The translations under genes were made by a program, and so were the position numbers. Shown one piece after another: positions 12,301 to 60,661 of a stretch of 64,000 bases of DNA (position 1 is the stretch's first letter; each line of letters opens with the position of its first letter). A model generated the notes under the pieces. That model saw only the letters and a list, made by a program, of their open reading frames with translations. It had not been told where the DNA came from and did no database searches. The DNA comes from Bugula neritina (lineage: Eukaryota; Animalia; Bryozoa), in assembly GCA_964035545.1 (NCBI GenBank), contig OZ037767.1:2863680-2927679 (forward strand), read 5' to 3'.

Positions 12301-15300
12301 TGGTTTTCTGTAAGGATTATAATATTGAAAATGCGATCTTGAGCAATAAAATTGAAATATGATATAGACAGCAATTGAGATTTTCTGCAGCTGTTTCAAT
12401 AATACTTTTCCAGTTACCTTCATATATAATAATATTTTAGAGCTTTGCCAAGTCAAACAAAAAAACCAGCTCTCCATCGTAAGCCAGAAAAGAAGGGCCT
12501 ACAGAAAGGAATAGGACACAACAAATATGTGCAAACACCTAAAAGGATGCAGAAAAAGATTAGAAGCAAAGCTGTTCAATGCTGGTATATAGAAATATGG
12601 CGAAATAGTATTGTTCACTTAGCTCAAAAACTGAATTCATAGCTTTTCTACATATTTATTTTTATTTAAAATGCATGTTCTAATGCAACAAAAAACCAAA
12701 TATTTTTGTGTAATGGAAATAATATTTTTAATTTTCCACCTCAAGGTGTGTCAAAAATAAATTTGGACAATATATCTACTTGTAGTCTCAGTTTCCATTG
12801 AAATGTAGATATTGTAGAATATGATCTTAGAGTCACTTGAAAAGTTCAGCGCAAAAATAGTCACCATATTGAAGTATATTCACCATTATTGCAACTCAAA
12901 CTCAACGGTAAATTAATTTCAAAGGTCAGGGAGATTGCAAATAATGAGGTTTATTCTCATAGTAAGCTGTACACACTACAAGAGGCAGTAGCAACTGACT
13001 GCTACTAAAAATCACCAGAGTGTTAATGTTCATAAATCTTCATTGTACACGAATTTGCTGAACATCCATTCAGCAAATTCTTCCTCATCTTCAGTTGGGG
13101 GGAATGTAGCTTGCACCCAATCGTATAAGCAAGCTGGTAAAGGGCGTCTCTCACCCTTTTTAATATCTGGAAACAGCCAGAACACCAAAAACCGGTAGCT
13201 GCAGAACCTTTTTTTAGTGTTGAGAGAATGGGCCTTCTCATCAAACAAATCATCTACCAAAATAAATGATTGGCTAAATAATCAAGTAAGACTATCTAGA
13301 AAAACTAACAATGACAGTTACTGATCTACAGTAGCAATTGACTAACCATGATATCTCAGGTAGCTGCTGTATGCAACTTCTAATACAGCTGGTTGCGTCA
13401 ATTGCTGTACTCCCGGGTGCTGTGTTATACATTCCATGCTGCTATCTAATCGAAGGTTTGCAGCATGATCACGGCAACAAACAGACTGTTCCACTGTAGG
13501 CTGATTTTGGCAGCGGTGGCAAGTGCACCACTCCGTGGCTGGCCTTATATTTTTCTACAAAACAAACAAGCTTTTCTAAAAACGTTATTACCAGTATCAT
13601 CCACATTAAGTCCATTGATTACTGTGTCTAAATTTGTTTCCTGTATGTTTCTTTGTATTGAAAATTGAGTCCAATGAGGCTGAAGTTTGAAAATACTTTA
13701 AAATCATGGGTTTTAAAATATTCCAAGTTTGCATTACTGTTCAAACTATTTTTATATTTATAGTTGAAAATTAATTAGATTTTTTATATCAAAACAAACT
13801 CATAATTTTTGCTATGAAATAAACTAATTTTCAGAAATTTTAAAATATTTTATTGTTGTTAGTACTATATGTTATACTATAAAAGCAGAAATTCAGAGAA
13901 ATAGGGGGCTTAGAAATAAAATACTAAATGCTATCATCGTGAATGCAAGTTTCACATGATTATGTATGTGATTAACTTATTTTGTTAAGGATCGGTATAA
14001 CCACAATTACAATAAAAGTGAATAATAATTATCATTATTATGCATTTATAAAAATACGGTCTTTCCCTTGACTTAAATTATCAGGTAAATCTAACTACAA
14101 ATAATTAATACTAATACCTGTATTGGTAGTAGTAATAACAAAATTAGTATTGATCAAATATTTAATTACTTGACTGGAATTTGTAATCATTAAATTTAAT
14201 GATTATCACTTTATTATTAATAATATTATTATTATATAAACCGATAGCAATCATCAAATATTTAGCTTGTAATTTGATATCATGCTTGCTCTAAAGCTTT
14301 AGTAGCACAAAACTCAGCTATATTAACTAATTAAGCCAGGATCAATACGAGCATTGGCATTGAGCATTGGAATTTCGATTACAAAATGAAAATGAAATAT
14401 TATAATTATAATAATTTATAACTTATACTAGCTTATACTTATAACTTAAAGTTAAAGTATTACTATTAGTATTAGTATTACTATTAGTATTACGGTATTA
14501 GTAACACTATAGTTTATAAAATTAAATCGTACTGATACTGTAAAATTATAAATATTATCACCTGTTGCTCATCAGTAACAGTAAAATCCTTGTCATGACT
14601 ATCATCTCCATTTTCATCTTGATACGTAAACGGCTCAAACTGATAGCCCATTACTTCAGAAATCTCAGTGACAGCGTGAGTGTGATTGTCATAGTCATAC
14701 TCATTGCGATTCTCACTGTGCTCTAAGTATTCTTCGTCAGAGCCAGATATGTTCATATTGATATCGTATTTATGTTATTTCTGTATTAGGTTTATCTTTA
14801 TCACAATTACACTGCACAGACTCGGACACGGTAAGTTGGTAGCTATGTATTTATTGCCGCGAAATTTGTTTATGAAATAAAACCTAAATTCCACAAAAAA
14901 ATACTAATTGGGGGCTAGACAGACGTCCGATAAATTAAAAATGCTAAAACTAAGGTTACATGCAACGGAAAATATAGCCAATACTTAATTTCCGAATGTC
15001 TTACAGGCGGCGTTTCCATCTATTTCTCGCAACTGCGGTGTAATACGTCACAGAAGGGCGAAAAAAATTCTCGAAGTTTTTTGGACATGCATGCACTAAA
15101 ACTGTTATAAAACAAAATTGTTTAGACCTGAAACCCTAAAAGAGTGTTAAAATGATAGCTAAGACATAGATGAATATTTTCATGCTATATAAGTAAAGTG
15201 TGTCAGGAATTCTTTAATCACTTCAAGTTTACAGTTTTGGTGCATAACTAAGTAAAGCAAAATACATTTATTTAGTAAAAACAAGTAAAGAATATGAGAT

Positions 15301-36291: not shown

Positions 36292-37269
36292 TCTGGCGCT
36301 TCCCTCTGAATCTGTCCGAGAAAAAAATAAATTGAAACAAATATATATCTATATAAAGATGATTCGACATTTACAACTGAATATTATATAGTCCTAGCGA
36401 AAATAACAATATCATAATTTTTTCCAGTATTATAATTGGTGAACACTATTAATTGATAACAATTATACTTATAGCTTAAATTATTCTTTATCTTAGGTAA
36501 ATTGCTAAGTTTGCAGGTGATAATACTAATAAGTAATTGCATCATAATTACTATTACTATTAGTATTACTAAACTTACCTATAATTTCATTATATTTATT
36601 ATTTATCATCAATCATAATCATATTTAAATTATCGTTGCTACACTCCCATATACAAATAGTTTACTATACTAATAATAAATATTATTATAATTACAAATT
36701 ATATATTGTTAGCCTTATTAATATTATATATAATAATATATTATTATACTGCATAAACTTAAAGTGACAATCATAATTATTTTAGTTTTACTCAATATCA
36801 TGACAAATTTCAATTCAATGAGACTGGGTGACAGTATCATACTGATAGTGATGGTGTATCAGAATAAAAGTAATAACCACAATCACAATGACAATAGTTA
36901 TTAATTACATTATCATTATGAACATGTTGAACTTGATCACTAGTTGATGTTACATGAAGTTGAACATCATAATTATCAAGCTCAGCATGAACATGAGCAC
37001 CAGATTCAGTATTAGCATCATACTAAGTCTAACTATGAGTATGGAGTTGAGAAATCACTATCAGTAGAGTATCAGCATCACATTGACATTTTGATTCGCA
37101 GTTCACTATCACTATGATCTTGAGCTTGAAGTATGTCTATGATAATGATCATAAATAAAATTATTTTCGATTACGAATTACTATTAAATTTAGTATGAAA
37201 TTAAATATCAAAACCACTGCATGAATGTCCAATTTTACAGCTAAATGAACTTTGTAAAAAATGTTATGC

Positions 37270-37900
37270 TTATTAACACGTTGTTTTTTAATCAGGTTTC
37301 ACCGGTGTTGACGAAAACGCGAGTATTAAATGCATGTTTTATAGTTGCTCCATTGTGTTTATATTACACTCCAGAATAAAAGAAAAAATAGTTTTATAAG
37401 CAGCCTCAAGTTGGGAGCGACAGAGTGCAGTGGTTTGCAGTTCTCAAGTTTAAAGCTGGGAGTTTTAGTAAACGCCAACTCTAAACATGAGAATTTTAAA
37501 CTACTGCACTTATTCACCCTCGATTTTGAGCTGTTTATAGAATTATTTACACAGAAGCACACGCAATCTCCAATAAGTTGTGTTCTTATTATTTTACGAA
37601 AGCCTTAAAGACTGCTCGATAATACTAAAAAAAATTAAATTAAAATAGCAGGTTATAAAACATTTGTAAGTTGTACTCGCTACCGATGAATATAATCTTC
37701 GTGGTAGCTTGAAATTGTGACGTTTGACGCCGTATCGAAACATTAGGTGCAAAAAGATCCATTTCAATGCAAATCATTTTTCAGTACCCGGGAGCTAAGG
37801 TTGCGGACTAGTACATTTCCAAACTTCTCTGCTGAAATGTTTTTTTTTTCAATTTTCTCGCTTTTATCCCTTCATTGATAATTTAAATTTCTAAATAAGT
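37270..37900. promoter_or_regulatory. Probable bidirectional promoter region shared by MTR and PIGT
   Basis: CpG-enriched patch between divergent genes whose ATGs (36291, 38563) are each immediately preceded by a splice acceptor, implying non-coding first exons here. Confidence 0.55.
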
Positions 37901-38562
37901 GTAACATTAGCTAGTAAGTGTAACTAATAGTAATACTATAACATTAACTGTCATAAAGTATTATTACTATTACTATTAGTATTAGAAATAGAAATCATAG
38001 TAAAACTAAAAGTAAAACTAAATCACTAATCAGTAAAACTAAATCAAAATCAAAATGTAGTACTAGTAGACTAATACTAATTTAATACTAATAGTAATAC
38101 TAGTAATACTAAATCTAATAGTAATATTTATTTAATAGTAATACTTATGGTTATGACATTGATTGCTTAATTTCAAATTAGTCAAATTTGCATAATCATA
38201 ATCATAATGGTCATGTATAAAAATTCAAAATAAAAATTGGTACAAGCATGTAGTGTGTGCACCTGCACCACAGCAATGGCCTTCAAACCATGTTTTCAGC
38301 TTGCTGCTAACCACAGTCCTTAGCCTGCTTAAAAACCCTTCTTACCATTAGAGGTTTTCACAATGATAATGGCTTTAAACAAAAATGTGTTTATATGGGT
38401 TGAAGCAATAAGAAACTTAATGACTAACCAAGTTGGGTCATGATTTAGCCAAAGAAAAGTCAAGTCCGTATTTATTTGAAATGACTTGCAAGTAGTCTAA
38501 TATAATATAATTCCTATGTTGTAGAAGCTGTTGGGCTAGCCAAATAGTCAGAAGTTGAAATC

Positions 38563-45897: not shown

Positions 45898-46739
45898 CAA
45901 CTGCAAAGTTATTTAGAAAATAATCACCCCAAAAACCAGCAGTCAAAAATAATAATTATACAACATCATTGATTATTCATGGAATTTTATAAATTTATAA
46001 TTATCTGAGACTAAGTAAATGTAAGTCTTAATCTAGTATAAATCTTAGTTTTACTCGTAGTCTATTAACTAGCACTATGACTGTAACTGCAATTGCATGA
46101 ATACAAGAATGAGTATCAGTATGACATCGACTGAAAGTCAATGACTGACTATCACTGTGACTATGAGACTTTGACTATGAGTATTAGTATGACAGTGACT
46201 ATCATTATGAGATTGAGCATGACTATGAGTATAACTGCAACATCAACTATCACTGTCAGTAGCACTAGATCACAGCATCAGCATGAGCATCAGACTCACT
46301 CTCAGAGTCAGTATTACTATGATTTTCACCGGAGTCTATCACTATTAGTGAGTCACTAATACCATAATAGTACTACTAGTAGTAATACTACCCATATCAC
46401 TATCAGTATGAGCATCACTGATCAGCGATCTTTAAGTTTATGTCTAAAGACTAATGTAAATCAAAATGACTAATACTAATAGGCTACAGTAACACCAATA
46501 GTAATACTAAAAAATAATAAACTTAAAGCTTTAGCTATAGAGTAATTTTACTGGTACTTAACTTACAGTTAGTGTTACACTGATCTCACTTTGACAGTTT
46601 GACTTTAATTTTCATTTTGCTTGAATTTAAAATCAAATTCAAAATTAATGAGAGTATTACTCACTGTGTAGCAGTTTTGTTAGGTCTGCTAGTAACCGCA
46701 AGCTTATCAGAGTAGGTTTAGGAATTCAACTGATGTCTT

Positions 46740-48754: not shown

Positions 48755-49835
48755 CACTGTGACTGTGAGTCTCAGTCTGTTAGTTGTCAAATTGGACTTG
48801 GCAACTTGCAAAGTTTTAGCTTTACTCAAAAAGATTCAGCACGGCCACTGGCACTAGGCACTAGGCATTTCAAATTCTCTGTCTTTGCTCAGACCCCAGC
48901 ACTAGCAGCACCTACTAATACTTTATACTATCAAAGGGTTAAACTTAAATCACTCAAAGGGTTAATAAATCACTCTGCCTACTATCATCAATTAAACCAG
49001 CAAAAATTGTTATCGTTATTTTTGAGAAACAGTGTGAGTGTGAATATCATACTTAATAATTTTAATAACCTTGCGGGGAAACTCAGTCCTACATCTAAAT
49101 CATTATCATTATGACTAGTCGAGGATACTGAGAGACGAGTGCTAAAGTTTTTCACAAATGGCTTAATTTGAGTCGATAACGCCGTTTAAAAGCTTGTAAG
49201 GACAACTCTGAATATACCCTTTATACATACAAATTGATAATAATATGGTTGAGTATACGCCATAGGGTCTACAAATCTATATATAATTATTAACTATAAT
49301 TTGCTAGTTTCTGTTGAATTTATCAGCTATTCGGTCACTAATAAAGTTAGCTTACAAAGATTTTTCTTATCAGTTTATATTTGTAGCTTACGTTAAGTTT
49401 CTATAGTTTTGATGGCTGACACTTTAAAACAAAAAAGTGACAGCTATAGCAACCTGCCAACACTTACAATCACTAAACCTGAGTCAATTTTTATTACTAT
49501 TTCTGAGCAAGGAGAACATCTGTAATACCTTTGAGGGCATAGGCTACCAAATTCAAATTACTATCAATAGAGTCATTAGACTTAGGAATTATCTGATCAC
49601 TAATTTTTGATTGACCATAGGACATAACTAAAATCGAACTGCACTGCAAAATTATGTATCATAATTGATTATAATTGTATTATAAACAATAAAACAACCT
49701 AAATACAACATTTAAAAAACATTGATTATTAAATTCAAAAATACATCAAAAATTGCATAGAAATAATACCTTATAGCATACTTTTCATAACAAATAAAAA
49801 AGACTTTGAAAAAAAAAAGTTTAATGTATAGTAAA

Positions 49836-52359
49836 TCAAATCTTAGCGTTATCATAATCAGACTTTCCACCAGTCTTAAACAACAGTTCGATGTCAGAAA
49901 TAATAATGTCATGAGTGATGGCCTTACACATGTCATAGATGGTAAGGGCGGCCAGTGAAACAGCCGTCAAAGCTTCCATTTCCACACCAGTAGAAGACTC
50001 AGTCTTAACCTCACTGTATAAAATAACACTGTGGCTGTCCGCCACAAGGTCAAAATCTACAGACACCTTAGAGAGGTTAATACTGTGACACAGTGGAATT
50101 AGGTTGCTGGTCTTTTTAGCTCCAGTAATCCCAGCAATACGTGCTACAGAGAGCACGTCCCCTTTAGCTAACTGGTTTTCTATAACAAGGTTATATGCTT
50201 GTTTACCAAGATACACACGAGCTGTAGCCTTGGCAATACGCACTGCAGGTAGTTTACCAGACACGTCAACCATATTAGCTTTACCTGCAGAGTCTGTGTG
50301 AGTTAAGGAAGAAGTTCCAGAATATGTGTCACGATTTGATTGGTTAGAAAGTAATGATCCAACATTACTCAGTACAGACGCTATAGACATTTCTGGTGCC
50401 TCGCCAAACCTCTCTCGATACTGATCATTCCAATAATCTCCGGAATATTTACACTCTGCAGATACTATGTCATCAGGTTTAGCTGTGACATCATCAGATT
50501 TAGCTGTGACATCATCAGATTTAGCTGTTAGATGACGCACATGATTAGAGCCATCAAATACATGACTATTATGATTGGAAGAGTTAGACTTGGTAGAATA
50601 AAGTCTGGCAGATGAGAATTGGCGAGTTTTCAACTTGGGCAGATAACTGGATACCCATTCTAAAAAACATGATGCCAAAAACTCTACGATTTTTACAAGC
50701 TGTACAATTATCATAGAAAAGTAATTTTTATGTTCAAAGATGATTCTGCTCCAATTCATTAAGTTTCCTTCACATTTTAAGTAGAAACCAATTTTGAGAT
50801 ACTAAGTTTCAGTAGTTACAACAATACGAAGCTATGCCCAAAAACACATTTTTTTTCAAATTTAAATTAATTTACTTAGAATTAGTTAAAACCAAATTAC
50901 TAGCACCAAAAACATGTAGCCTATGCAATTTGGTTTGAGTATTTAACTGCATAGAAAGTCTATCATCCCTTTTTTAAGCAATTATGAAACTGTACAATTA
51001 CTTATAGTCATTATTAAAATATCTATGTAAGAATTAAAATCTTTAACATGTAACTCATAAAAGAGAAGGCGCGTTTAAAAGCATTCTAATCGAGCTAATA
51101 ATTTTATTTTGAAATGTATTACATATATTAATATATTCAGCAACAAAGACTTCTATATGTAATTATACCTAAAATAAAATCTACCAAAACACAATTAAAC
51201 AGAAAACAAAATTAATTGAAATTAAAATTTATAAAATTTCAAATGTTTGTCATACATTCGTCGTGTCACCCACCAATTAAACTAATTGATCGGTTTATAC
51301 ATAGTTGAGCTTGTAGTAGAGCAATATTACATGAAACAGAGGTGACAACTCTGAAAAGGTAATTGCAAGTGTCATAAATGATTTATAAACATACATGACC
51401 ACAAAATATTCTTTTCAAAATCTTGCAAAAGACCAAAACACGACTTCATAGTATTGGTTTAAAAGCTTCTAAGTAATAACTGGCAGTGCTTCAAACATAT
51501 TATAAGAAACTTTCAGCTTAGCAAGCACTTTAGAGTCAGAATTTTCAAATTCACTACTTTGCATAGAGTTTTTAATAGAATTTACTTACTCAATAGACTG
51601 CAAGGTTCTGTTGAGCTGATTTTACTATATGACGCGAAATTTGCTAAATAGGTGGGGGGTAAAGTAGGGCCTGGACTTTTCTACAACAATGAAAAAAGAA
51701 ATAGTAATGCTTCTAAAAGGATATGACAAAACGCAGATTATAATGCAGGCTATTTGAACATTGACAATTCTAAGTATTTCACAGTTATATTGTATTTTTA
51801 CAACTCTTATCGAAAATCCTGGAGAAAAAAAAGTTTTGCAGGCTACTAGTAACTTAACTTAATGAAAATCTATTGCGGACAATATATTAAACAGATGCAC
51901 ATAATATATGAAGGCGGGTGAGTTTTAATAACTTTATTACTCACACTTTGGCTATCATGTTGATTTTCAGCATGCAAGATATTTTTCTCTCTCGCTGAGC
52001 TATGATGATTGCTAAAATTCAGCCCTCTACCAATCATTGACTTCAAACTCCATTGTGGCTGTGGAGAAGCATAAACGCGCGTAAGGTGGCGTAGACATCT
52101 TTCACCTGTTGCAAGATGTCATATACGACTTACAATATTTGAATTTAATAAATATATCAGAAAAAGAACTATAAAGCATAGAAACGGTTATAATCACTAC
52201 ACCTTATTCAGTAGTTTATTTACTAGCAAGCATAACTTGCCAAGTCTCATTTTTATGATGAGAGCTAAAGAAACAAACTTGCAATACTACAAAAAGTTTC
52301 AGCTAACACAATACTTTTCAACCCTAAAGACTCATCATTCACTTAAACTTACCACTCAT
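49836..52359 (-). CDS. MOCS1: MOCS1B / MoaC cyclic pyranopterin monophosphate synthase, predicted stand-alone 301-aa form
   Basis: MoaC motifs LTHTDSAGKANMVDVSGK, KGDVLSVARIAGITGAKKTSNLIPLCH, TGVEMEALTAVSLAALTIYDMCKA, KTGGKS (certain). Proposed exons 52359-52353, 52105-52031, 50659-49836 join in frame (906 nt); the 5' exons are inferred. Confidence 0.9.
51266..51309 (-). pseudogene. Second, diverged copy of the MOCS1A terminal exon (NRSISLIGG-stop)
   Basis: AAC CGA TCA ATT AGT TTA ATT GGT GGG TGA vs genuine AAC AGA CCA ATG ATA CTA ATT GGT GGC TGA: 23 of 30 nt identical. Confidence 0.65.
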
Positions 52360-53189
52360 AACTTGAGACTGACTCGGGCTTTTTGTACAACTCCAGGTTA
52401 CTATAAACACATAAATCAGTGGTAGTATCCACCAGAATATAATCAAGCGTACTAGCAATACTAATAGCACTAGTAGAGCTATAACTATGACTAAATCGCA
52501 ATATATTAGTATTATATAATAACTTAGCCTATAAGTATCTTTATGAGTACTTTATCTGTATTAAACGTTCACTTTGACTTTCACTTAGAGTTAGTAATCT
52601 TAATTTTGTTTTTTAAAGCTAATATTACTAGTTTAGCATTTGCACGGCATTATGAGTATTTGATTAAAATTGAGTTATTACTTGAAGATGATAGTCGAGA
52701 GCCATAACTCAAACTGTAACATAAACTGTAAAATTAAACATAAATAGAAGTTGATTATTACGTAAGACTCAACACTAATACTAATAGTTACTAATAGTAA
52801 TAATAATAGACTAGGTCTAATAGTAATACTAATAGTTAATCTTTATCTCATGAGTCAAACTTAATGTTATCATTATGATCATCATCATGATCATCATCAA
52901 GTGATCATCATCATCATCATCCTGATGATGATCTCCTAAAACTTTTACTAAAAGTAAAGCTTAATAATTATAATCATAATGGGCATAACTTAAAAATTTA
53001 AAATGATATATCATTCATGACTAATTGATGTTGATGCTGCACATTTATTGAGTTGTGCTATTACAAAGGCTTTAAAAAGTTTAGCCAACACAATGATCAT
53101 GATAGTGATGGTGAATATCATCGCAACAGTCACTGGGTGTAAAAAGTAATTGTTGAACTCCTTCTGTAGGTGAAAAGAGTTATTGGAAA

Positions 53190-53310
53190 TTCATTTCAGT
53201 ATTTTTACCGAGCATCGACGCGTCAAAACTACAAAAATATTATTTCGCGAACGCGGCTCCAGAGTTATCTTCCTTTAACTGATATGGCTACATCGCTCGC
53301 CCCTGAATAT
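53190..53310 (-). promoter_or_regulatory. Candidate independent promoter for MOCS1B
   Basis: CpG-dense patch (CGAGCATCGACGCGTC...TTCGCGAACGCGG...CATCGCTCGCCC) followed on the minus strand by the low-complexity tract that marks other 5' gene ends in this window. Confidence 0.5.
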
Positions 53311-54765
53311 GCATTACAAATTATGCATTTTTTGTGTACTTCTGAACTATTTACATTCATACTGAAGCAGAATAAATGTATTAGCTAACAGCAATAATAC
53401 ATGCTTGTATAAAATATCATCTTTGACCTCAAGAAAAAATGAGATAGCAAAGGTTTGCCAACACAATAGCTATGTTTTAAATTAGCTTTTTAAACTTATA
53501 TACCTTTCCAATCTTACAATAAAGCATATTTCCTGATATTTAGAAAATAGAGAACTAAGCAACTAGTTTAGAAGGCTCCATTAGCAAAACAGGAGGATTA
53601 CCTTCTCTCCCCACCCCCAAAGAAAGCTCATATTTTCACCGCATTACAGTCCAGTGGTGCTACAGCTAGATAGGCATATGCATCGTACATAATAATATGA
53701 TCATGGTAGGAAACAACAAAACAAAACTATTAATCATAAAAATTTCATCTTTTATTTTTATTGCATTTGATTTGAAAATTTGTCATAGATAATCATATAA
53801 AAATATGCAATAAACAATTTTCCTTATATTTTATAATACAAACTTTGCACCATAATAACATGTATCGTAGTACATATGGAATGTAAATCATTTACAAAGG
53901 GAATTTCAGGCCAACTTATCCAGCAAATCAAGAAAATAAAAACAGAATATGAAAATAATACAATATTTGTACACAAATTTTCAATAGCTTATTTTATAAA
54001 TTTTTGTCACCAAATTTGGTTTAAAAAACATAAAACTAAAGACTAATAGGATATAAAAATTATAATTATAATTGTCCTTTAAAAATGTATTTTTACTGAA
54101 ACCAGCAACAACTGGCAAATAAATTCGGTAACTTTTGATTAGAGCAGTCAGAAAGCTCAAGTATTAACAAAACATCATGAAAGCAACCTATGAACAATAA
54201 TGTACAAACATCAGTATGTTGCATAATTTTGCATAAAATAATACCACTCAAATCACCTATCAATAAAAACACACTACACTGCGATGAACAGATTTCAATA
54301 AACTTTAATAAATATTAAAAATTAATGATTTATTAAAATATTATTATTGAAAACACTAAACCTCTAAGAACAGATAACTCTTACTTTGATCAAAATATTA
54401 TGAGAGCACTTGCTAACAACTTGCTAAAATGGTGTCAAATGACAAAATCAGCAAAAACAAAGCGTAGAAAATGCCAAAACCATTATTAGCGTTAGCAAGG
54501 CATAAATTAAAAGTATTGCATATAATCACATTCATGCTGCAGAAAAATATTTTTCAAAATAAAGCTTGCTAAATTTGAAATTCTTTACCCCTTTTACGGC
54601 AAAGAAAATTCTCCATCTCTTGAAAAACTTGACGACTGCATTAGATTGCGTAAACGCAGCTTCACAGCATGCGCTCACCGCTCTAATATATTTATTGTCT
54701 GTGACACCATCATCTGAGTGATATATTCAAATGAAAGCTGTACCACCTGCTATACGTACATCATA

Positions 54766-57700
54766 TCAGCCACCAATTAGTATCATTGGTCTGTTCTTCA
54801 TATTTGTTAGATTACTCATACCTGAAACAATACAACAACACTTATAGTCGAGTACAACACAATCGAGATAAGACTTTGAAGAACTGTTGAGTGATACCCA
54901 TTGCTGCTGCTTGTTGCTATTGTTACTTATTGCTATGGTAATATATTAAAGTTTAAGTAGATTTCAGATATAATAGTCCAATTCCACCATCTAGAATTTT
55001 AGAACCTAAATAGTACTAGAACTTTAGGAGTTTCACAAAAGAAAAAAATTCCAGTCAAAAACAATTTCAAGATTTTACAGCATAAAGATGCATAAACTAT
55101 TATATATAACAGGTTACATTTACCAGCATGCTGTTTTTTCTTTTTTTTCACAGCTTTTCCTATGATGTCTAGAAGTTCATCGTCTGGTAAGTCAGACCTC
55201 AAAGCATCTCTCAAAGAAACCTCAGCATTACCAAACAAACACACCTGAATTAACAAGTAAAGATTGGAGTAAAACTTGTGAGGTACTCCACACCAGTGTG
55301 CAGTATTTGAGTGATGGTTGCACTGATATTAATTTTTTTCACAACATACAATACAGATCTTTTAAAAAATGCTTCACCAAAGTTAATCAATGCTACACTA
55401 TTTTTAAATTATAATTTATTGAGCAAATAAGTGTTAGAACACTTATTGAGACCCTGTCCATATATCCCACCTTCAAATTACCATCTGCTGTAATTCTCAG
55501 CCTATTACAGCCACCGCAGAAATGCTCACTCATTGAGGTAATGAAACCAATTTTACCGGCAAATCCAGGTGCAGTGAAAGACTAAAATACAGACAACATA
55601 GAGATGAATTACGCAGTATTACATCCCAATGTAACTGCATGCATATAGTTTTTTACCAAAAGTGTATTCTGTGCAAACATGAATTTAGGTGATTTTAACT
55701 CATGCAAGTTTCTCTAAAATTAGTAAGACAACTCCAACTAGATTAGAAAAATATGTTTGCTATAAAAAGAAAAAGATAACTCCAACATTTATAAAGAATG
55801 CCAATTTTATAAGGTTCAAGTAATTCTACAGTACAATTAGTTTTAATTGGTTAAAATAATGTAATTATTAAAAATCCAGAAAAAAAGTTTTATAAAAAGT
55901 TTATGATGTCCTTTGAGAACCATTCACCTTGGATGTATCAGTGGAGTCATTGGACAGTCTATAGAGGTTAGGAAACTCTTTCCGTATCAACTCTAACATC
56001 TCCATGTAGCTGAACATTTTCATCTGACTCCATTTGTTTCCATCAAAAGGCATGTACTCTATGAACCTCACGTCTATTGGCTAAACCAAGATAAATATGC
56101 AACTACAAAATTATCTATTACGACATAATCAAAGCCTAAAAGAAAGCTAATACTCCAAGAGTAGACAATCACCTCAAAAGTAAATTGCACAGATCTATGA
56201 GCTGTACCTTATCCAGAAAAGTTCAATAAGGAAAAATATATAGTAATGTTGAATTATTTTTACTGCATATTTAAAATAAAATATTATGAGCATAAATCTA
56301 AGAACTTTGGTTAGCAGGTAAAGAGAGTCCAGTTGTTTGAAATATATATAATATAGTTATCTATGAAGTAGTTTAAAGCAAATAGAGTTACCCCAGTCCT
56401 GGTTTTTAGTGAAAAAAATTAATTAAAGATGCATAGTTTATCAATAGCTGAGAAAATAAATTATTCAGTTTTACTCTAAATACTTAATATAAAACATGGC
56501 AGGTTGAGATAAGTTGTGACCTGAGCAACCAGATGACAGAAAATTGAGTCATCAAACTCACCAAAGTCTGCGCAAGTTTTACGAAGCCCACAATCTCGTC
56601 TTCATTCAATCCTCTCATCACCACACAATTGAGTTTGATCCTAGCAAAACCGCTGTCAATGGCAGCGTGTATTCCATCCATCACATTTTGCCAACCTACA
56701 TGGTCAGCATAAATTCAGTTACTGAACAGAAAAATCAAAATGAATATGAAACTTTTGAAACAATATAAATTTAATAAATTAGTAAACGATGTTGAAGAAG
56801 AATCACTAGGCTTATCATTAGGTTTCATCGACTTAAAAAAATATTTTCCTCAACTTAGTACTAAGTTAGTAGTGTACTGAGTTGTACTAAGTTAAAATAG
56901 TATTGAGTTAAAACTCTAAGTTACCACAGGATTGAGAAAAATATATTTCCTTTGATTCAGCAAACAATTAACTTAGTTCTATTAAATGGTGCAAGTCTGC
57001 ATCTGCGCTGAAAATGAAATCATGACTCTACACTATACGTTTTTACAATTGCTAAAATATGTATTCAATACAAATGCATGAAACCCTATTAGAAAATCTC
57101 AAAGTGAGTCAAAATTAAATAATTCAAAAAGGTATGCAACCTGGAAAAAAATTACAGCAGCTCAAATGAAAAACTAGGTACTCTGTTATTAGTGTTCAGG
57201 AGTGACAAAATATAAAAAGGTGTGTCAGTTTTTATAGCAACCCAACCAGAGTAATTATTTTTCAAAATTAATTTTTTTATTGCACAAAAACAGTTAGACA
57301 CTTAGAATATTCAACAAAAACTCTGGCTTCAGCTATCGGCAGCTCATATTTAGTGAAAACAAGTACTTGACTATTTTATTTGATGGAAATTAATACAAGA
57401 AATGAAATATGAAAAACCTAACCATTTCTTCTCGTGACAAACTGGAACTTTTTGGGTTCTAAGGTGTCGAGTGAAATGTTGATATGATCAAGCCCTGCTT
57501 GCTTCAACGCCTTTGCTTTTCGTTTCAATGTTATACCATTCGTAGTCATACCAATGGTCTTCAGTCCCTCCGACTTCAACTCGTTCAAAGATTCTATACA
57601 TGTAGGAATAACTGGCTATATTTCTATGAATTATTACATTGCAAGAAAATATGAATATAAAGATTCATGAAAGAAAAATTAGCAATCTGAAAATTTGGCC

Positions 57701-58954
57701 ATTAATTAAACTGGAATCTAATTCAAAAAGAAAACTTCAGCACTCTAACACTGAAAATAGTTTGTCTAAGAAACCTAACAGAGATCATATTGGAGAACAC
57801 AGAATCAAGTTTTAAAAATATTCTGAATTGCGAGCCTCTGTTTTTGTGATACACAAACCCCTACAATGTCAAATTTCCACTTTATGGTAATACACACTAA
57901 ATATGCTGGATGCAAGAATTTCTCCTAAAGTTAACAAATAACAATACTAACAGATATACCTATGATTTGCAGCAGATCTTTACGAACCATGGGTTCTCCA
58001 CCAGTTAATCGGATCTTATCAACTCCTTCAGCAACAAACAGCTGAGCTAATTTCAAAACCTCGGCATTAGATAAAAGTTTTTCCTTTTTGGTTAATTCAA
58101 CTCCTTCTTCTGGCATACAATATTTACCTGTATAGATTATATATACATATATATGCACATGATACTATTTACCTTTATATAATATATAGACAAACAAGCA
58201 AGCACGCACATATTAAAACATGACTTACATCGTAAATTGCAGCGCTCCGTTAAAGAAATTCTAAGATATGTATGATGTCTGGAAAAAGAGTCTACTAAGA
58301 AATGTGAGAAAGGTAAAATGGTGCTTGGATTTTCCTACAACATAAAAACCATCAAATATATTTCAACAATGCATCAAGATGATGACGTCCTATAGATGAT
58401 CCAATAGGTAAATAAATGAGCTGCAAAACTGAAGTTTTTTTTTACATTTATTACAAACCTTTCCATTTTTAATTCTGATATGGCATATGTTACTAGAAAA
58501 TTTAGTGCTGACAAAAAAAATTTTAATAACTCAAATTCTTCAACTTTTTTGAAAACATAACTTTTTCTATTGCATTCTTTAGCATGTCTCAACTTCTTCA
58601 TTACAATGCCTGCATTACTAATTACAACATTAAAAGCAAGTAATTTTAGTTTTGGTTGTAAATACCGGCAACTGCAATTTATTGATAGCAATTTTATAAC
58701 CAGTTGTTTTACTAAGTGTAAAAATAAGTTTCTTTTACCATTTGATGGCTATTTTGATCTTCAACTTGTATTTCGCTGTTCAGTTTTTGTCTACCTATAT
58801 TATCAGATGAAATTTTTTGGCCAATAAAAGTTGAACTGTTTGACTTCGTACTCCATAGTGACCGATGAAATGTAATTCGTGACTCAAAGTGATCGAAATG
58901 CTGCAAACATCTTTTCCTTGTTGCAGCAGCCGAAGGTAGCAGTTTAAATGCCAT
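54766..58954 (-). CDS. MOCS1: MOCS1A / MoaA radical-SAM GTP 3',8-cyclase, 411 aa, 9 coding exons
   Basis: Exons 58954-58739, 58334-58229, 58127-57960, 57593-57423, 56695-56562, 56080-55928, 55581-55471, 55244-55124, 54821-54766 (1236 nt). [67 protein letters not shown]-terminal NRPMILIGG-stop; presequence-like N-terminus. Confidence 0.96.
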
Positions 58955-60661
58955 TCCAATCTACAAGTTTAATTAAAAACACAAAATATATAAAGCTCAT
59001 ATAATTAGTGTTAAACAATCAACATGTATATGCAAATGTTTGACTTAGCATTTTGTAACAAGGCTTGTATTTTATTAATATTTTTGTTATTGTAATTAGA
59101 AAGGGGGTAAGCGCAATACTTGCCTGACTTAAACCAAAGAGTGTCACCATAGCAAACAAATCGTATAGGCAGACATATTGAAAGTTAGGCAGCAAGTTAC
59201 TTAGAATTACAGTATTGAAATTTTACATAACTTTATACCTACTTGGCACTTGGGTTTATCTGTAAACCTTGTGAGTGTAACTTGATTAAATTTATTAGAA
59301 GTATAAGCATAAAAATTGCAATAGTAAGATGCTTAAAACTTGCAGTTCAAATTTACTAATGATTTAGTTCTTTTGAAAACTGTTCAAATACTTTACATTT
59401 CACTTGAAAACACATCATCATGATGATGATCATGATCAGCTATTGCTAAACTACAATTCAAATTGATTAAACAAGAACATAAACTCTTAATAGTATTCGT
59501 TGCGAACAACCATCAGTTTAGTGATAAGAATTAGAAAAATTTAAAACTCATAACTCATAGCTAAGCTTCACTTATTTAAAATTACGAGACAAAACTTGTA
59601 TGCCGAGGTTGAAAATAAATTAAAATTATTTAAAATGATGGCAAAACAGAAATAACTGGGTGTATGTGATAGCTCATTATCTTGGGTTGCAGGTATAACG
59701 GTTAAGATTATTTCTTCAATGTGTATTTATGTGAGAATCCGTAACATTTACGACACTAATTGGTGTTAAAACAGTATTTTTATAAAGGAGAGAGTAACTC
59801 GTAGACTTCCTTTAAGAGGATACTCGCGTCTTTTTAAAAAGAGGAAACATGTGCTTTTTGCAAAAGTTAACTCCTAATGAGATTGCTGACTGATGGCTAA
59901 TAGTAATTGTCATTAGGGTCGTGTCATTGAGTAATTGCATAGTTGTTCATTACTTCATATTCTTAAGTTAAAATTGAGTGTAAGTGTTAGTTTTAGTTTA
60001 TTTTGAAGTTAATCATAAAATAATCATTATTTAGTCTTCATAAAAAGTAATTATTTTTTAATTAATTACATGTTTTAAATATTTTATTAACACATTGACA
60101 TTATGATTATTTTAAAATCATGAATTATTACATTTACTTCTAACATGGTATTTACATCAACATTTTTTATATGAAACTTGTAAGGTTGTAAATGTATACT
60201 TAAAGTTAATGATGATCTTAGAGTTGATGTTATACTTGGTCTTATAGAAGTATCGATATCCACGTCGATACTCCTCCATATTCATATTGACTTTTCTACT
60301 GTGGCATGTGCTGCTATGTTAATTGCTGTTAAACAGATTAGATACTGAAAATTTAATAGCTATGCTAAGCACCTAACGCAATCAAATTATGTATGCAATT
60401 AGATTTTTACCTGGTTTCTCTTTCTTGCTCACAGTTTATGTCTCATGTATATCGGTTTTATTGGTATTTTACTCACCGATTTACATATAAATTTGTTTGT
60501 TTTAGTCACCTCTGACCAGGTCGAACTTCAGTACATAAGAGATAGAGGATTAATTAAAGTTTTGAAGCTGGCTCATCAGATCAAAAGGCTCTCATCTTAG
60601 TACCTCCTTATAGCTTGATCTCCAATAGTCAGTATAATCTTTATGATGAAAGCATTGAATG

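Follow-up and report, generated by a model that had tools for sequence, protein, structure and literature searches.

Within a 64,000-nucleotide stretch of the Bugula neritina genome (contig OZ037767.1, positions 2,863,680 to 2,927,679 of the forward strand; hereafter the window), we studied the MOCS1 locus, and we assign a probability of about 0.65 to the reading that MOCS1B, the MoaC half of the locus, is carried on a separate messenger RNA (mRNA) with its own start codon and is not fused to MOCS1A. The assessment is based on exon joints found in three RNA runs, on the lack of any fusion joint from MOCS1A exon 8 in the same runs, on matched depths along the new path and on a reading frame that stays open. 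Humans and other studied animals produce MOCS1B fused to MOCS1A, with import and then cleavage of the product; the fusion has been argued to coordinate expression and targeting of the two halves, and it has been described as common to unikonts. All coordinates given here are window positions and all features of the locus lie on the minus strand, where MOCS1A exons 8 and 9, the latter with the LIGG stop, are followed about 4.1 kilobases (kb) on by an intact MoaC exon. A first-pass annotation made from the sequence had proposed an independent monocistronic MOCS1B gene; the ATG-bearing 5' exons and the missing fusion junction bear out one part of this proposal, while its other part, a promoter of its own, is not supported by the contigs, in which the 5' end is spliced at 52401.

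RNA contigs were aligned to positions 49700-55300 from X1 and X2 (listed as 'RNA-Seq', one sample) and from X3 (another study), along with X14, the DNA source. The contigs of the three RNA runs cover exon-like blocks only, at 90-99% identity, which marks them as coming from a sibling lineage, and trace a path from exon A' (52400-52353) through exon B (52105-51945) and exon C (51680-51590) to exon E (50659-49836), with GT..AG at the joints. The elements of this path, together with a remnant lying between C and E, are as follows (lengths in nucleotides, nt):

52353..52400, minus strand: exon A', 48 nt, consisting of 41 nt without ATG, the ATG at 52359-52357, AGT and a final G, with donor GTAAGT.
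51945..52105, minus strand: exon B, 161 nt, phase 1 to phase 0, encoding ERCLRHLTRVYASPQPQW..., with donor GTGAGT.
51590..51680, minus strand: exon C, 91 nt, phase 0 to phase 1, with donor GTAAGT, 94.5% alike in the two lineages and gapless.
51260..51310, minus strand: remnant of cassette D, 51 nt, in which the window has AA for the AG, GA for the GT and an in-frame TAG.
49836..50659, minus strand: MoaC exon E, with a linker of 128 residues, the MoaC domain (about 50273-49839) and the stop, behind the phase-1 acceptor at 50659.

The joints 52353>52105 and 51945>51680 are present in X1, X2 and X3, and one contig of X3, 1091 letters long, links 49916-50656 through a short piece to 51589-51680, 51945-52103 and 52351-52402. 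The first of these joints is one that the first-pass annotation had predicted, and the acceptor it had expected at 50659, for a phase-1 MoaC exon about 4 kb (4.1 kb by our count) past the MOCS1A stop, is used by the RNA contigs as well. The stretch between these two points has to be redrawn: no joint uses the donor at 52031 that was to close a 75-nt exon at 52105-52031, the exon reaching 51945 (161 nt), and the predicted protein is wrong after ...KSMI, where the 91-nt exon at 51680-51590 was missed. From exon C, the acceptor 50659 is reached directly in X1 and X2 and by way of cassette D in X1 and X3 (in the contig of X3, C and E are 53 letters apart), and every contig that crosses this acceptor arrives from C or D. 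Cassette D (STTMDKPVNYFNWWVPQ; at about 3975-4025 of L001, a genomic contig of the sibling lineage from which the RNA comes) is in frame and is included as well as skipped in the sibling lineage, and is, judged by its letters, dead in the window.

The frame from ATG 52359 (ATG, AGT, G|GT GAA ... AGT| AAA ... TTG A|AA TGG) is open throughout, and the lengths of the four exons sum to about 360 codons. Exons B and C together hold about 84 open codons, for which the chance is about 0.0015 if stops occur with a frequency of 0.075 per codon, and the indels between the lineages, 12 nt (in exon B), 21 nt and 51 nt, are all in frame; 47 of the 48 letters of A' are identical to the sibling lineage. The depth of the MoaC exon in comparison to that of A'-B was about 31-40 versus 37 in X1 and about 4 versus 5 in X2, and it was 14.4 on a single contig in X3. 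The depth of the MoaC exon thus approximates that of A'-B in each run, indicating that most MoaC RNA runs through A'-B.

The two MOCS1A exons that bear on a possible fusion are these:

55124..55246, minus strand: MOCS1A exon 8, C-terminal Mob_synth_C part, ending in ...GCTG, with a phase-1 donor after 55124.
54765..54821, minus strand: coding part of MOCS1A exon 9, ending in ...RPMILIGG followed by TGA.

The exon 8 donor and the MoaC-exon acceptor are both in phase 1, and the frame fits both 52105 and 50659, in agreement with what the first-pass annotation had stated for the donor at 55124. The coexisting fusion junctions that it had allowed for, 55124>52105 and 55124>50659, were looked for and are absent from the contigs of X1, X2 and X3, from which rare forms could escape; exon 8 is joined solely to exon 9, and this joint (55124>54821) has a depth of 174 in X1 and 29.5 in X2.

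Exon E matches the Pfam family MoaC (PF01967) with E = 8.5e-52 over profile positions 1-136 of 136, that is, as a full-length domain, and it matches E. coli MoaC with E = 4.7e-35 and solved MoaC chains with E = 1e-35. The KGDV, IPLCH and YDMCK motifs of MoaC are aligned and identical in exon E, and these motifs hold the catalytic residues of the E. coli protein, namely Lys51 (KGDV), His77 (IPLCH), and Asp128 and Lys131 (YDMCK). MoaC is single-copy in the 216-megabase assembly, and so are exons A' and B, which rules out a retrocopy as the origin of the spliced contigs.

On its 5' side, the path begins at the following site:

52401..52402, minus strand: 3' splice site AG, where the genome match of all RNA contigs ends.

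The alignments end at 52402 in X1, X2 and X3, with 24, 4 and 4 non-genomic letters beyond, respectively. Positions 52359-52353 had been taken for the plain end of a first exon, but contig coverage runs over 52400-52353 and ends precisely at this AG, which is preceded by a T-rich to pyrimidine-rich run and a CTGAT branch-like site. Since the 50 nt upstream of 52402 are near-identical in both lineages, divergence cannot explain the break, which is best read as a splice junction, and since the AG still belongs to the matched letters, AG must also be the end of whatever is spliced onto A'. Exon 8, which among the MOCS1A donors inspected is the one with a suitable phase, was rejected as this partner because it ends in TG in both lineages (its end is identical in L001), and exons 6 and 7, which do end in AG, were rejected as in-frame partners because they are in phase 0 and A' starts with TAA, so that a stop would follow immediately. 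An in-frame fusion of MOCS1A and MOCS1B through A' is thus unlikely, and ATG 52359 is the first ATG past the junction.

Among the candidates for the partner, a trans-spliced leader, on a transcript that would start near the CpG patch described below, comes first, at somewhat less than an even chance. A small cis-spliced 5' exon with its own promoter is considerably less likely, and an exon of the MOCS1A unit or a read-through form is to be ranked level with it, followed closely by something else altogether; a candidate for the small 5' exon is marked by a conserved donor, AAG|GTAT at 53504, which adjoins the first exon of one GenBank model. The site resembles the operons resolved by spliced-leader (SL) trans-splicing in nematodes, tunicates and chaetognaths in having an AG acceptor tens of nt before a downstream ATG, with non-genomic letters at that place, and differs from them in that its spacer, at about 1.3 kb, is longer than is usual in operons and in that the candidate leader is known only as unmatched letters. 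In the literature searched, no paper was found on SL trans-splicing in Bryozoa or Bugula, nor any describing a split MOCS1 arrangement. A protein search with the linker of protein P0122 (the region and a 110-residue query) for proteins on RNA contigs returned the GenBank models only, and an exact look-up of residues 18-383 of protein P0122 gave no match. The closest Logan and JGI matches (L001-L003 and L011) are genomic contigs of the sibling lineage, which were of use for conservation only and not for the 5' end.

The alternative that survives best, though we consider it unlikely, is that the locus is a single transcription unit, in which the MoaC mRNAs start at the MOCS1A promoter and A' is reached from exon 6 or 7 or from a read-through donor (AAG|GTATAT at 53504 or CAG|GTGGTA at 54747), on a bicistronic RNA like human type I whose second frame is reinitiated or silent. 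There is precedent for such an RNA in human MOCS1, where the type I mRNA is bicistronic and where splicing that goes around exon 9 or skips it yields the MOCS1AB fusion of types II and III. The aligned stretch does not include exons 6 and 7, so a 24-letter piece derived from them could not be placed, but a junction from either would truncate MOCS1A at a TAA formed at the joint. As for the read-through donors, the one at 53504 is conserved (GTATGT in L004), stands 13 nt from the first exon of one GenBank model and is flanked by an 8-nt indel that would block the placing of a short piece, while the one at 54747 reads GC and not GT in the RNA lineage and is read through by an X2 contig. Two further results speak against a single unit: positions 52505-53813 are without contig coverage except for repeats, and the ratio of MOCS1A depth to A'-B contig depth is not fixed, being about 5 in X1, 6 in X2 and 86 in X3.

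The reading that MOCS1B is carried on a separate mRNA also has to be weighed against a number of points that tell the other way. The RNA is that of a sibling lineage and not the window's own, and the contigs reveal which forms are present, with rare isoforms dropped and transcript starts invisible to them. A shared MOCS1A transcription unit may apply, as the letters of the A' partner are not read, and a minor exon 8 fusion may exist, exon 8 being frame-compatible with A', B and E; in addition, the frame of A' is open for 13 codons upstream of the ATG, which is not significant (P about 0.37) and permits a fusion. The public genomic contig L011 (JGI metagenome 3300002729), from the sibling lineage, has an 85-nt linker deletion at about 530 that breaks the frame from ATG 52359 and may reflect either an allele with this deletion or a slip of the assembly at the repeat. 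The phase-1 MoaC acceptor in two relatives, L006 and L008, suits the classic fusion arrangement, and the call of an N-terminal leader, presented below, rests on composition and hydrophobic moment.

That the classic MOCS1AB fusion is still productive, with exon 8 spliced to E or A' at a low level and the A'-B-C RNA minor or unproductive, appears improbable to us: exon 8, A', B and E all share phase 1, the fusion is the form described for unikonts at large and rare forms are lost from contigs, but no such joint occurs in the three runs despite 4-40x coverage of the MoaC exon, the contigs over acceptor 50659 all come from C or D, and B and C are open with in-frame indels in both lineages. Slightly less probable again is that A' is the true first exon, with a start at about 52402 (TATAG|TAAC, initiator-like, with TATATT at about -39) and with the extra letters as adapter or template-switch remnants, for although the 60-70 nt upstream of 52402 are conserved at 93-100% and one X3 contig has an Illumina adapter at its opposite end, the break falls at the identical point, right after the AG, in all three libraries, which come from two studies, the AG stands behind the pyrimidine-rich run and the CTGAT site, and the intron 3' ends before B and C are just as conserved.

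If MOCS1B is translated from a separate mRNA with ATG 52359 as its start, the protein would have an N-terminus with the composition of a mitochondrial presequence, being basic, acid-poor and hydroxyl-rich with a predicted amphipathic helix. The first 40 residues (MSG and the first 37 of exon B) have a net charge of +4 with one acidic residue, and for the 14-mer at the N-terminus, ERCLRHLTRVYASP, the hydrophobic moment is 0.69, a value reached by 2.3% of shuffles (P = 0.023). The first-pass annotation had described a leader with R-x-F-S and R-x-Y-S cleavage-like motifs; the motifs are real (TRQFSS and ARLYST in exon E, with R-x-[FY]-S recurring in relatives) but belong to the old linker, whereas the amphipathic helix is located at the N-terminus of exon B. 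The linker also contains a 21-nt in-frame tandem repeat of 2.8 copies (TAKSDDV) at 50470-50528, of which the sibling lineage has one copy fewer.

The presequence exon of MOCS1A, with which exon B was compared, is the following:

58739..58954, minus strand: coding part of MOCS1A exon 1, 72 residues with a basic N-terminal leader, in frame, with donor ATG|GTAAAA in phase 0.

The leader of this exon likewise has a net charge of +4. A likeness between it and exon B was first spotted by eye and extends over nearly the whole length, with a local score of 44 against 24.9 +/- 5.1 for shuffles (P = 0.003) and, at the DNA level, a codon-shuffle P of 0.007, and the strongest amphipathic 14-mer of each protein lies inside the aligned segment (0.69 for exon B and 0.63 for MOCS1A). 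Since the likeness was found by eye, these values are no more than suggestive of a relationship between exon B and the MOCS1A presequence exon. A separate observation is that the exon 1 leader and the start of the MoaC-exon linker (50590-50620) have L[WY]STKSNSS in common, at 8 of 9 residues; the serine codons differ between the two (AGY versus TCN), and the motif may therefore be selected and not recently copied.

Between the two coding parts, the spacer contains three features:

53740..54764, minus strand: probable 3' untranslated region of MOCS1A, with RNA contig pieces at 54715-54818, 53900-54066 and 53876-53942.
53126..53350, no strand: CpG patch, candidate promoter, with 10 CpG per 150 nt and an observed/expected ratio of 1.67 versus 0.46 for the whole window.
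52703..52990, no strand: fast-evolving tract of low complexity, with (GAT/ATC)n ahead of a period-6 A[CG]T array.

Two conserved AATAAA signals lie at about 53765-53750, and a conserved block spans 53825-53745. The CpG patch, which the first-pass annotation had placed at about 53200-53300, ranks in strength among the top three AT-rich patches of the window, and its CpGs are retained in the sibling lineage; the low-complexity tract, also noticed at that stage, is made up of (ATC)n (52869-52933) and an ACTAAT array of period 6 (52774-52834), and is the least conserved part of the spacer. The spacer thus reads, in order, MOCS1A AATAAA, CpG patch, periodic tract, acceptor and, 41 nt later, ATG, and the 5' end of PIGT in the same window, a gene start that is not in doubt, is alike in order and spacing (CpG patch at 37601-37825, tract at 37847-38207, AG at 38523 and ATG 40 nt on); similar tracts precede the starts of MTR and of the downstream gene. 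A promoter of its own for MOCS1B is plausible, the support being correlative, with no RNA start seen in the contigs. A segmental duplication of the MOCS1A promoter region was considered and rejected, the comparison having yielded nothing beyond (GAT)n and a pair of short, colinear matches in coding sequence. A search of the spacer for known RNAs gave no Rfam match better than E = 0.33 and no transfer RNA, and TGACG, which occurs 48 times in the window, is uninformative as a promoter mark.

The source of the window belongs to the B. neritina complex, and the closest protein clusters with B. neritina entries of GenBank; across introns, the window and the published B. neritina assembly (GCA_010799875.2) share about 85% identity. 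One relative has a compact layout: in L008 (ENA ERZ4903317, 9170-10650), which is 58% identical, the LIGG stop is followed after about 0.7 kb by a phase-1 MoaC exon with IPIRMYS. In L006 and L007, which look genomic, the phase-1 acceptor before the MoaC exon is kept. A tblastn search with the exon B/C/D region (the first 130 residues of protein P0123) found no counterpart in L006, L008 or L009. The phase-1 acceptors in these relatives, together with the lack of a match to exons B and C, point to the Bugula layout as the derived one, and the compact MOCS1 of L008 is likely to be the ancestral state.

The GenBank annotation of B. neritina already models MOCS1B separately, as KAF6020296.1 (CNX3, 383 residues) and KAF6026085.1 (MOCS1, 990 residues), and both models share the exons described here, from the ATG of A' through B, C, D and E. 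Unlike the RNA, one GenBank model has an extra first exon of 10 nt (53527-53518) that ends in TT and not in AG. KAF6026085.1 (L005, 10001-23376) fuses MOCS1B with the next gene, the MOCS1A model on L004 (1-7100) stops after about exon 5 with 309 residues, and among the genes called on the L005 haplotype there is no MOCS1A model. Our analysis corrects the public gene models in three respects, as their first exon is wrong, a neighbouring gene has been merged into one of them and MOCS1A is cut short.

In comparison to human MOCS1, the Bugula locus is alike in gene order, in the GG stop in exon 9, in the long non-conserved linker with targeting or cleavage motifs (in human, 95 residues in exon 10 with an internal signal and a site for the mitochondrial processing peptidase) and in the phase of donor and acceptor, and differs by three extra, ATG-bearing exons spliced into the old acceptor, by the absence of any exon 8 fusion among the forms seen and by a promoter-like spacer of 4.1 kb. 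Plant CNX2/CNX3 and bacterial MoaA/MoaC, which are separate genes, resemble it in that MoaC is a polypeptide by itself and carries an organelle leader at its N-terminus, but the Bugula split would be secondary, leaving in place both the old phase-1 acceptor and the gene order of animals, in which the MoaC exon comes after MOCS1A. Separate MOCS1A and MOCS1B genes are not shown in the C. elegans paper that we consulted.

As a tentative proposal, which we hold to be possible but doubtful as a whole, the locus, whose fused or bicistronic form has been described as ancestral to animals, may have been split in place in Bugula, with a promoter-like module and a diverged copy of the MOCS1A presequence exon now standing before MoaC and with the 5' end provided by SL trans-splicing. 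On our main reading, which we hold to be likely, the locus retains the ancestral order of MOCS1A exons and MoaC exon, and MoaC is expressed mainly on a separate mature mRNA, the 5' end of which is made by splicing of a partner onto acceptor 52401. Translation from ATG 52359 through B, C and the old acceptor 50659 would then yield a MOCS1B precursor of about 360 residues, whose new basic, amphipathic N-terminus may act as a mitochondrial leader for a predicted import, while the R-x-[FY]-S motifs of the old linker could serve as processing sites, in line with the signal and cleavage idea for human exon 10. MOCS1A, for its part, would be made from exons 1-9, with its own 3' untranslated region ending near 53.74 kb. 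If this is true, the coupling of MOCS1A and MOCS1B would be dispensable in an animal that keeps the locus, and the addition of new 5' exons into an old internal acceptor would represent one route to the fission of a fused gene. The locus also offers a concrete place for asking whether bryozoans use leader trans-splicing.

The remaining MOCS1A exons are found at about 58.95-55.4 kb, and they include the radical-SAM exon (ERCNLRC...YCMPEEG) with its CxxxCxxC; the C-terminal double glycine is also present. Exon 8 matches PF06463 with E = 1.6e-07 and 31.7 bits, which is under the Pfam cut-off for such a fragment, and exon 9 is 94.7% alike between the window and the sibling lineage. The depth profile of run X3 is odd, with a depth of 1235 for a contig of exons 7-8 (55121-55246), no coverage of exon 9 and a depth of 14 for the MoaC contig, and this is possibly due to the library type or to an A-rich run in exon 8.

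The ATG of MOCS1A stands 6 nt past a TTGTAG acceptor (58955-58962, minus strand), and the distance from acceptor to ATG is 40 nt in PIGT (38523) and 20 nt for an MTR ATG (about 36312), so that an acceptor shortly before the start codon seems to be common in this window. Period-6 A[CG]T tracts occur at 36520-36580, 37847-38207, 14420-14560 and 46253-46492, at several gene 5' ends, and their settings vary: they lie closely past a GTAAGT-type donor (MTR and PIGT), about 60 nt past a GTGATA donor (at 14.5 kb) or past a CpG patch. At the 14.5-kb locus, the tract is located in intron 1, downstream of a coding first exon.

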